Positions 13,692 through 16,600 of a DNA stretch of 64,000 nucleotides are shown piece by piece; position 1 is the stretch's first letter, and the number at the start of each line of letters is the position of its first letter. The DNA comes from Dimorphilus gyrociliatus. Taxonomy: Eukaryota > Animalia > Annelida. The notes below the pieces were generated by a model. It saw only the letters and a program-made list of their open reading frames with translations, made no database searches and was not told the DNA's origin. Location of the stretch: the NCBI GenBank assembly GCA_904063045.1, contig CAJFCJ010000002.1, forward strand, positions 992,001 to 1,056,000. The letters run 5' to 3'. Both the position numbers and the translations under genes were made by a program.

Positions 13692-16600
13692 ATGAGCAAA
13701 GAACTGAAATTAAAAAGTCCCGTCGGCGCGGAATCGGTCGCTTACTCGTGGCCTTTTCCGTCTCATCCGGTAAGTTTCACCAAAATGACATACCCTGAAC
13801 CACCCGAAACCGATCGATTAAATATTTCTATATTTATACATAGGACGGGAAGACATGTGAATTAATCGAAACTCTAAGGTAAGCTATATTTGAGAATTCT
13901 TGTTTTTATTGGGGTCGTCTGACCTAATTATCATGTAGTTTATGTTAACCCTTTGCCACCCACCGACTTCGCGCCATTTCCTCGCCAACTTACTTTTCTA
14001 ATTTTATATAGATGGGTCGGTAAAGATGTTGAAGAATTAAACGTGGTGACTCGTAATTTAATAAGTGACTGTGATATTAAAAGGTAAAATTCCCACATTT
14101 TTCACTGTAATCTTTTCTAAATATGCGTGTTATGCAGTTACGAAAGCGTTAAAAATCTTTGTGATAGATACAATAAGGCAATCGACAGAATTCTACAACT
14201 CGTTAGTATTTTCATTTCGTGTTTACGCATGTAATGTCGAACTATTGAACTTGCAGAGGAAAGGCATAGCCAGACCATCGGGTACGCCTCTAAGACCATG
14301 CAATGGGCTTCTTAAACATATTTTACAACAATGTTATGTAAGAGCAGTCCTAGAGCCGGAAAAACTTAATCAATACGAGCCGTTTTCACCTGAGGTACAG
14401 CAAAGGTGCCAGTAGACAGAGGGTTAATTCAAATAAGCTGGTATAATTTACGAGTCTGTTATCCTAACAGGCCAACAAACAAACACAGATGTCTATCAAG
14501 CAGGCGTCATGTTAATGTACTGCAGTCGACAGCTGACTGAATTAACCCTTTGCTTACTGCGAAAGATAATGTCTTAACTTTATTCACGCCATGTTGTGTT
14601 TGAATAGGTATACGGGGAGACGTCATACGAATTAGTAGAACAGATGCTCAAATATATCAAGAAAGATTTTAGCGACGATTGTTTATTTATTGATCTCGGA
14701 AGCGGAGTTGGGCAGGTCGTACTGCAAGTGGCTGCTTCGACAACTGTTAAGCGCTGCATAGGAATTGAGAAGGCAGAGTATCCTTCCTCGTGTGCTATAA
14801 ACATGCAAATAGAATTTAGGAAATGGATGAGTTGGTTCGGAAAAACATTCTCCGAGTTCGAAATTATCCGGGGTGATTTTATCGACGAGCAGTTTAGAGA
14901 CTCCATTAGAGAGGCCGAGTATATATATATATACTTTAACATAAAAGAGAAACATGTATTAACTAATATTGTTGAAACAGTGTATTGTTTGTGAACAATT
15001 TTGCTTTTGGTCCCCGAGTAGACCTTGAGCTAAAAGAAAGATTTAACGACATGAAAGAAGGTGCAAAGATTGTATCATCGAAAGCATTTTGCCCATTGAA
15101 CTTTCGAATTAATGATCGAGCGTTAAAAGGTTTATTGCTTAAAAATACTTAAGGTTTATTTAATTTAAATAATTTCAGACGTAGCATCTATATTAACTGT
15201 CGAAGAACTAACTCCTATGAGCGGTAATGTGTCTTGGACGTGCAAACCTGTTACTTTTACTTTACATACAGTCAATAGGTCCATGGTGGGTACAGAAATA
15301 ATTTAGAATAACGATTTTAATAAATCATTAAAATATTTAACTGATGATACAGCAAAATTATATTAAGTTAATTAATAATCTTCATTTGAGGAAACATTTT
15401 CATCATTGTCACTCATGAATTCGTATATGATATGTATTTTTTTAATGCATATTATATATTTCGTATTTGAGTGTGACTGCCAGTATAAAAGATACATAAG
15501 TCTTTGATAAGGGTGAAAGTTTACACTGCCCGCACTGGCTTAGTATTTTCATGATTCATGAAACTGTAAATGTGTTAATTAATAATTGATTATTGATAAA
15601 TGAAATGTAAAAATTTTAATAATGACTGTTTCAGTTGGAAGATTATTTCAAAGGGTTAAAAAATCCGTCTATGAGGGTAAGTGGATTATTAATGAGTAGG
15701 TTTTTGTTTGATTGAAGTGTTGATGAGGTGTGAGAGATAATTTAATACACTGCCAGGCGGGCATTTATGATGAATAATACCGTAATTGAAAAATTGCTGA
15801 AGAATGCTTGAAATACGGTCATTTTCACTTGTCATTCATCTCAATCTGTTGGTCATTTGGCAAAATGTTTAGTTCTGTATTGTAATCATTTAACAATATC
15901 AAGCAGGAGGAAGAAAAGATTGTAAGAAAAGACAGAAAAGGCAGAGTGATAGGATCTTACACGAATGGAGTGAAACTTAGCGGGCAGGTAAACACATAAT
16001 TCCAATTCGGTAGCTAATATTTAGTAGTCGTCTTAGCTTAAATTGTCGTGAGAGCCTAATGTTCGCAATGTGTAGGACAAAAAAGGATATATAAGTATAT
16101 TGTTTGGCTAATTGAAAACGCCGACAGGTTGGCGAAAAACAAAGTAATGGTGATAAGTCCACATCGGAGCGCAGATGTAGTACTTCATCTACAGACGGCG
16201 CAAAGAACGACTTATTCGGCCCAACTACCAGAAGACAATGGAATGAATGGGTTCGGTCAAATACTGCCTGCCAGCCATCTTCGAATGAAGTGAGCTATAT
16301 TTCTCGTTTAATACAGTAATCGCTTTGGCTTGGTTTGTTTATTGTCTGTCCTTGTAATATACTATTCTGGTCGATTAAATCCTATTGACGAACCACTGCG
16401 AACACTGCCGTAATTATTCCACAAAATCTTGTAGCAATCTCTCATGGTATCCATTCTTTGCCATATATATTTTCCATCCCAGCTTTGATATCTATTCAAG
16501 TAGGAGTTTGACAACTGAGGATCTTTGAACCGCAGGGTAGTTGAGAGTGTTGGTCGTCTGAGTCTGTCTGTTAATCTTTGCTTTTTGTCATCTACATTCC

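Follow-up and report, generated by a model that had tools for sequence, protein, structure and literature searches.

A cassette exon for the ubiquitin-contact helix of the DOT1L orthologue in Dimorphilus gyrociliatus, and a predicted conserved duplex between its flanking introns

The textbook example of cross-talk between histone marks is DOT1L, where ubiquitination of histone H2B (H2Bub) stimulates methylation of H3K79 through one short helix. In the human protein, residues 321-332 form this amphipathic helix, which touches the hydrophobic patch of H2B-linked ubiquitin; the mutations F326A and L329A lower DOT1L activity, whereas L322A does not (Jang et al., PMC6546062). Here we analyze the exon for the corresponding helix in the annelid Dimorphilus gyrociliatus, in a window of 64,000 nucleotides (GenBank assembly GCA_904063045.1, contig CAJFCJ010000002.1, positions 992,001 to 1,056,000 of the forward strand), to whose first letter the coordinates below refer. 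The 42-nt exon at 15635-15676 is a genuine cassette exon; both mRNAs exist, and the skipped mRNA can be a major form. Skipping removes exactly the ubiquitin-contacting helix and keeps the reading frame. The exon encodes the residues that align with this helix in the human structures (6NJ9, 6NN6, 6J99; PMC6546062), with L, F and L at the three contact positions, but the human work altered the helix by point mutation, whereas the natural isoform described here deletes the whole helix.

The closest described systems on the RNA side are exons looped out by intron pairing. In human genes and in Drosophila introns (PMC8052449, PMC2724269), loop-out pairing involves complementary segments in both introns that flank a cassette exon; the pairing is stable and conserved, and the bracketed exon shows reduced inclusion. 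Among human exons looped out by conserved complementary regions, inclusion is lower, and more so with stabler helices (PMC8052449). The Dimorphilus exon is bracketed in the same manner, with one arm in each flanking intron. Compared with the known loop-outs, the present case belongs to an animal with introns of about 60 nt, the loop measures only 212 nt, the 11-bp helix is almost all G-C, and the evolutionary support is conservation, not compensatory change. The locus also has a feature in common with the competing docking/selector structures that act in the splicing of Dscam and 14-3-3 zeta (PMC10790352), namely one element with two exclusive partners, one local and one distal. In contrast to those genes, a single cassette exon is concerned here (no duplicated exon copies of the docking/selector type were found in 15286-15903), and the predicted competition would set skipping versus inclusion rather than the choice of a variant. 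We propose that the duplex (11 bp, about -22 kcal/mol) would loop out the cassette, that the local fold would compete with it, and that the resulting short protein would respond poorly to H2Bub. Taken as a whole, we regard this proposal as about evenly poised. The cassette exon itself is real, and the locus is a plausible addition to the class of loop-out splicing structures.

The cassette exon and its two mRNAs

Judged by its sequence, the gene that contains the exon is an orthologue of DOT1L, the H3K79 methyltransferase. The Pfam DOT1 profile (PF08123) matches the three consecutive exons preceding the cassette (1.7e-28, 7.4e-15 and 8.3e-06; profile positions 23-205), and the best protein matches of the gene are from molluscs. 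A preliminary description of the locus had proposed a 42-nt, phase 0-0 exon lying between introns of 349 and 227 nt. Its coordinates and sequences for the exon, the introns and the arms, re-derived by script from 14400-16800, all match; the exon is borne out by the sequence and by the junctions of RNA contigs, and the intron lengths by the same junctions. The exon runs TTGGAA...ATGAGG, codes for 14 residues and is framed by the acceptor ...ctgtttcag/ and the donor AGG/gtaagt (the slash marks the splice point).

A 64-residue spliced peptide, when aligned with the human DOT1L chains of the PDB, covers human residues 288-346. The cassette falls on residues 322-335, and its L, F and L sit on L322, F326 and L329 (LEDYFKGL versus L322-L329). 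The exon spans the aligned contact positions and therefore encodes essentially the whole ubiquitin-contact helix. The preliminary description had already aligned the exon peptide with human L322...F326 and assigned it a contact with ubiquitin; the PDB chain alignment agrees with the former, and published work (PMC6546062) with the latter.

For RNA evidence we used assembled contigs aligned over 13800-18900 (5,101 letters), which report the presence of joints and not read-level, stage or tissue ratios. The contigs place twelve GT..AG introns in the gene, six of them of 49-62 nt and the rest of 133, 140, 213, 227, 349 and 580 nt. The coral metatranscriptome run X1 has both inclusion joints. In run X2, from a marine metatranscriptome and a lineage 1-3% divergent, the skip joint is present on a 365-nt contig with a depth of 12.1, and there is no inclusion contig; the 365-nt contig is composed of 15177-15284, 15903-15984 and 16125-16290, in frame. 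In run X13 (library type unrecorded, contigs spliced) the inclusion joints have depths of 734 and 343 and the skip joint a depth of 482, so that in this run the two forms are of comparable depth. The skip junction from 15285 to 15904 that had been predicted in advance is, then, found in two runs from two studies (X2 and X13), where the contigs list it as 15284>15903. Unspliced contigs over both flanking introns, and over the intron of 580 nt, are present in X13 as well; their depth is between one fifth and one half of that of the exons.

The splice sites of the cassette itself are strong (ttcag/ and /gtaagt), while the outer donor, gtgggt, and the outer acceptor, caatatcaag/, are weaker. With weak outer sites and strong exon sites, skipping at a level of about 50% is therefore unlikely to be mere leakiness of the sites.

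Some details of the junctions are recorded here in their own right. The acceptor before the downstream exon is a tandem, AAG/CAG (15898-15906); the contigs show the start at 15904 only, and both related species described below have GAG/CAG at this place. One X1 contig enters the start of intron 1, departs from the window sequence at three positions within 15294-15307 (A>C, G>A, A>G), and represents unspliced RNA or DNA of a slightly different strain. The features of the unit are collected in Table 1.

Table 1. Features of the cassette unit and of the predicted RNA folds, in window coordinates.
Feature	Position	Strand	Basis and remarks
Upstream constitutive exon, end of DOT1 domain (...HTVNRSM), donor ATG/gtgggt	15180-15285	+	Pfam DOT1; joints 15127>15177, 15284>15634
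Upstream flanking intron, 349 nt, 25% GC	15286-15634	+	GT..AG joint; 15386-15634 conserved block
GCCAGU, predicted to pair locally with the upstream arm (3' half) and to close a three-way junction	15479-15484	+	Invariant in 3 species; P 0.23/0.9/0.3 without downstream arm
GGGU, predicted to pair locally with the upstream arm (5' half; GCCC, 15528-15531)	15511-15514	+	Local fold; invariant in 3 species
Upstream arm, conserved core GCCCGC-A-CUGGC	15528-15539	+	Pairing probability ~1.0; invariant in 3 species; start in preliminary description 15527
Cassette exon, 42 nt, phase 0-0	15635-15676	+	Inclusion joints X1, X13; skip joint X2, X13; PDB alignment
Downstream flanking intron, 227 nt, 33% GC	15677-15903	+	GT..AG joint 15675>15903; conserved blocks 15677-15747, 15806-15865
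Downstream arm GCCAG-GCGGGC, 11-nt invariant island	15752-15762	+	3-species alignment; end in preliminary description 15763
Downstream exon (QEEEKIV...), joined in frame to 15285 when the cassette is skipped	15904-15987	+	365-nt contig in X2

The intronic arms and a competing local fold

The arms had been described as TGCCCGCACTGGC (15527-15539) and GCCAGGCGGGCA (15752-15763), pairing over 12 bp with ten G-C pairs and one bulged A. All of this is present in the window, but only 11 bp of it are kept in the relatives. Nearest-neighbour energies calculated with RNAduplex in 30-nt windows give -28.6 kcal/mol for the best duplex of the two flanking introns. For 408 dinucleotide shuffles of both introns the mean is -17.1 kcal/mol (standard deviation 1.9), and not one attains the real energy. 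This energy is reached by 3 of 459 places of the same geometry elsewhere in the window, on both strands (0.65%), and by none of the 150 AT-rich ones. The arms alone account for -23.7 kcal/mol and the conserved 11-bp core for -22.1 kcal/mol. A simple local alignment score that counts pairs did not single out the duplex, and shuffles scored higher owing to long A-U helices. The duplex is not an outlier by pair count because such helices score equally, and the signal lies in the G-C content. Pair counting was replaced by the nearest-neighbour energies given above; RNAduplex applied to whole introns pairs everything and is uninformative.

Folding of the whole unit, 15286-15903, as the preliminary description had suggested, places the helix in both the minimum-energy and the centroid fold. 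Its pairing probability is ~1.0 in contexts of 618-1,400 nt and 0.85 in 2.5 kb. The sense strand folds at -73 kcal/mol (z -4.15; 0 of 200 shuffles), and the antisense strand at -43.8 kcal/mol (z -2.97). By these models the G-C-rich arms are a thermodynamic outlier, beyond chance. We also considered an origin of the arms from a repeat or transposon. Within 2 mismatches, the only further copy of the arms in the 64-kb window is a weak match at 9830, and the two arms have dissimilar flanks, which makes such an origin unlikely.

The upstream arm has a second predicted partner. The preliminary description had noted that ACTGGC could pair locally with GCCAGT at 15479-15484; this pairing exists, is conserved, and is a predicted competitor of the long-range duplex. 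It is part of a local three-way junction with the stems 15479-84/15534-39, 15488-93/15500-05, 15511-14/15528-31 and 15518-20/15525-27. If the RNA is folded without the downstream arm, as it would be during transcription, the window species adopts this junction as its minimum-energy fold, and so does species B, one of the two relatives (B and C) introduced below. All four variable columns in 15479-15539 lie in hairpin loops of the local fold. The long-range helix goes together with an alternative extended hairpin, which two of the substitutions in species B disrupt. The long-range helix itself is predicted in each of the three species (P 1.0, 0.47 and 1.0) and is kept by RNAalifold, and the forced-ensemble energies, long-range minus local, are -4.8, -0.1 and -5.3 kcal/mol. 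The upstream arm is thus predicted to have two mutually exclusive conserved partners, with energies that are near-bistable in one species.

Conservation in relatives and in other animals

Genomic loci of relatives were found through word searches with single-exon pieces on open reading frames (ORFs) called on Logan contigs. Species B (L003 and L005-L009, mutually identical) matches the window collinearly at 80-82% identity. Species C (L010), which comes from a long-read metagenome of Tara Pacific coral, shares 79% identity with the window and 82% with B. The word searches with exon-sized pieces gave only these two related species, and a search with the 64-residue spliced peptide added none. 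In a representative search with the DOT1 exon, no relative exceeded 60% identity in the DOT1 core. The top match of that search, a 757-residue protein (P0001), has two complete tandem DOT1 domains, with a helix-like segment behind each. It is not an orthologue, and it ranked first only because its two matches sum. A scan of JGI metagenomes returned two intronless DOT1 loci (52% identical; L001:491-1096 and L002:506-1111) from some other eukaryote. Their helix (LEKYFSILK) is contiguous with the DOT1 domain, and they are uninformative on introns.

Identity to species B is 48-71% in the short constitutive introns, 78-97% in the exons and 83-100% in the stretch 15386-15765 around the cassette. Along the upstream intron the sliding identity is 0.38-0.6 before 15386 and 0.83-1.0 from there on, and these 3' 250 nt (15386-15634) are more conserved than the coding exons. 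Purely synonymous changes were found in none of the 14 cassette codons, compared with 23 of 35 and 10 of 28 codons in the neighbouring exons (33 of 63; P about 0.001-0.006). The upstream exon, 15180-15285, in which the 23 of 35 codons changed, has identical amino acids in the three species. Depletion of synonymous change is typical of alternative exons under regulation. At the level of sequence comparison, the exon together with ~250 nt upstream and ~90 nt downstream is shown to be under purifying selection stronger than that on the neighbouring coding sequence.

Both arms are unchanged in species B and C as the 11-bp core, and the terminal pair T15527:A15763 is lost in both. The downstream arm forms an island: four bases on its 5' side differ in all three species, and the sequence on its 3' side is variable, with indels. 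Since 13% of the 12-mers of intron 1 and 7% of the 11-mers of intron 2 are fully invariant, a random pair of arms would be fully conserved with a frequency of ~1%. The single compensatory pair found lies outside the duplex, in a small hairpin that directly follows the upstream arm on its 3' side.

Other stretches of the gene are also conserved. The 215-nt intron at 14393-14607 is 87% identical to species B, an exon-like value far above the 48-71% of the short introns, and the intron 15988-16127 is 81% identical. The exon 16128-16289 (motif GPTTRRQW) has 94% DNA identity to species B. The 580-nt intron (16290-16869) is 78% conserved and is covered by unspliced contigs in X13 and X2; at the place that matches it in species B, an antisense ORF of 122 residues was called (L006:5708-6076, L007:2790-3158). 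Conserved clusters of UCAU/UCAC (YCAY-like) flank the cassette at 15399-15418, 15548-15563 and 15823-15850 and are possible binding sites of splicing regulators.

We then looked at the helix in other DOT1 proteins. Among the fetched proteins that have the anchor motif, the helix is present in 39 of 47, and two are without exactly the homologous segment. These are the amphioxus DOT1L RefSeq isoform X4 (XP_078658462.1), without LEDYFSSKIHNNSQG, and a fish gene model (KAG7268099.1), without LENYFSSLKNPKLR; both are annotation models. In both, the absent segment of 15 or 14 residues is the same homologous segment that is absent from the skipped form of Dimorphilus. In amphioxus the segment has a 45-nt exon to itself (L011:15388-15432), and the intron before it is positioned as in Dimorphilus. 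A literature search found no paper on a DOT1L isoform without the ubiquitin-contact helix.

Mytilus DOT1L isoforms vary at other places. A 46-residue segment homologous to 16128-16289 is present or absent, and may be a second ancient cassette. The exon before the helix occurs in two 30-residue versions (P0282 and P0278 versus P0283 and P0002); these look mutually exclusive and cover other ubiquitin-proximal residues.

Proposed pairing of the arms and other explanations of the splice choice

In the mechanism that we propose, the arms 15528-15539 and 15752-15762 would pair in the pre-mRNA and trap the branch site, both cassette splice sites and the exon in the 212-nt loop. Pairing would also draw the outer donor (15286) and the outer acceptor (15903) closer to each other, so that skipping would be favoured where the spliceosome is tuned to introns of ~60 nt. 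The median intron of D. gyrociliatus is 66 bp, and short introns are spliced most efficiently (PMC7854359); the high unspliced signal over the long flanking introns fits such short-intron-tuned splicing. Until the downstream arm is transcribed, the upstream arm would be held in the local three-way junction (15479-15539), and the balance or the kinetics of the local and the long-range fold may set the level of inclusion. The short protein would keep the methyltransferase core and respond poorly to H2B ubiquitination. Control of the splice choice by the pairing is likely, though not proven.

Several observations weigh against this mechanism. The RNA support consists of assembled contigs only, and the folds are equilibrium predictions, which take no account of bound proteins or of splicing during transcription. 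At a background of 0.65%, a duplex of this kind should occur in roughly one of every hundred or so intron pairs even before its conservation is considered, and the case had been selected by a reader from a 64-kb window. The three-species alignment and RNAalifold show no compensatory change in the arms, in which all 11 pairs are invariant; covariation is absent because the arms never vary. Conservation of the arms would suit protein or DNA recognition equally, and that of the upstream arm is not peculiar to it, since a long conserved block surrounds it. In amphioxus, the best duplex between the introns flanking the homologous exon (1.9 kb and 0.7 kb) has an energy of -25.3 kcal/mol, which is reached by 37% of shuffles. 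The amphioxus skip is annotated without an unusual duplex, and skipping of this exon therefore needs no such duplex. The cassette may therefore be ancient and the duplex a lineage-specific modulator of it. A broader idea, which we consider quite unlikely, is that skipping of the ubiquitin helix would be an ancient regulated bilaterian switch between H2Bub-dependent and H2Bub-independent or dominant-negative DOT1L, set in the annelid lineage by a bistable pre-mRNA fold in which the local three-way junction would compete with the 11-bp duplex.

In a rival explanation, proteins on the conserved flanks and the exon would regulate the cassette, with the arm complementarity incidental, or each arm a protein site, and the pairing not deciding. 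The conservation indeed reaches well past the arms (15386-15634, 15677-15747, 15806-15865), the conserved blocks hold the UCAU/UCAC clusters, the arms are without covariation, and in amphioxus no duplex stands out around the homologous exon, which is skipped all the same. However, two protein sites need no mutual 11-bp complementarity at an energy met by none of the 408 shuffles. What is more, the two copies differ by the bulged base and yet each is conserved, which fits a helix better than a motif of fixed spacing. We consider protein control of this kind rather unlikely, though the likeliest of the rivals. If recognition were of DNA instead, the conserved blocks would be an intronic enhancer or an alternative promoter, and the arms an inverted pair of GC-box or E2F-like sites. 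D. gyrociliatus has 944 open-chromatin peaks in introns that are larger than the non-regulatory ones (PMC7854359), and here other long introns are conserved as well (14393-14607 and 15988-16127, see above); all 11 of 11 pairs are Watson-Crick, so that the same repeat is present on both DNA strands. Conservation, however, is highest at the splice sites of the cassette and at its synonymous positions and runs on into them without a break, a pattern typical of splicing control; the sense fold is much stabler and more unusual than the antisense one, and the motif has no repeat elsewhere in the window. Such a DNA-level role of the conserved blocks seems improbable.

The duplex could also form and serve another RNA role, such as promoting inclusion, slowing the removal of the long introns, or back-splicing and circularization, with the skipped mRNA a by-product. 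Flanking inverted repeats are a classic promoter of back-splicing, and the unspliced X13 contigs over both flanking introns are in keeping with a role of this kind. No backward joint was seen among the assembled contigs, which would rarely show one; a circle of 42 nt would be unusually small, and published surveys tie exon loop-outs to lower inclusion (PMC8052449). Such a role is very improbable in our estimate. The last alternative is chance complementarity within a sequence conserved for unrelated reasons. It draws on the 0.65% natural background per place, on the many introns scanned by the reader, and on the proportions of 12-mers and 11-mers (13% and 7%) that are invariant in the two introns anyway. 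Combined, however, the strength of the duplex (<=0.0065) and the invariance of both arms (~0.01) amount to about 1e-4 per intron pair, and the bracketed exon proved to be the alternative one. Chance is in our estimate very improbable. Hosting of a small nucleolar RNA was rejected as a cause of the long introns: the C/D-box matches score 22-27 bits, as against gathering scores of 42-50. The sub-threshold C/D-box-like matches are at 15762-15814 and 15348-15436, and their box-like motifs are conserved in neither relative; the C-box-like ATGATGA (15767-15773) is deleted in both, and no part of intron 1 is less conserved than 15326-15385.

Returning to the cassette exon and the looping-out proposed for it, an abundant natural isoform without exactly the ubiquitin-contact helix would be a built-in separation-of-function allele, and it makes the role of DOT1L without the ubiquitin signal testable in vivo. 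The locus is, in addition, a small and clean splicing system: the unit has 618 nt, its helix 11 bp, and the competing fold is defined. It could be used to probe loop-out, and competition between structures, in an animal with a spliceosome adapted to very short introns.

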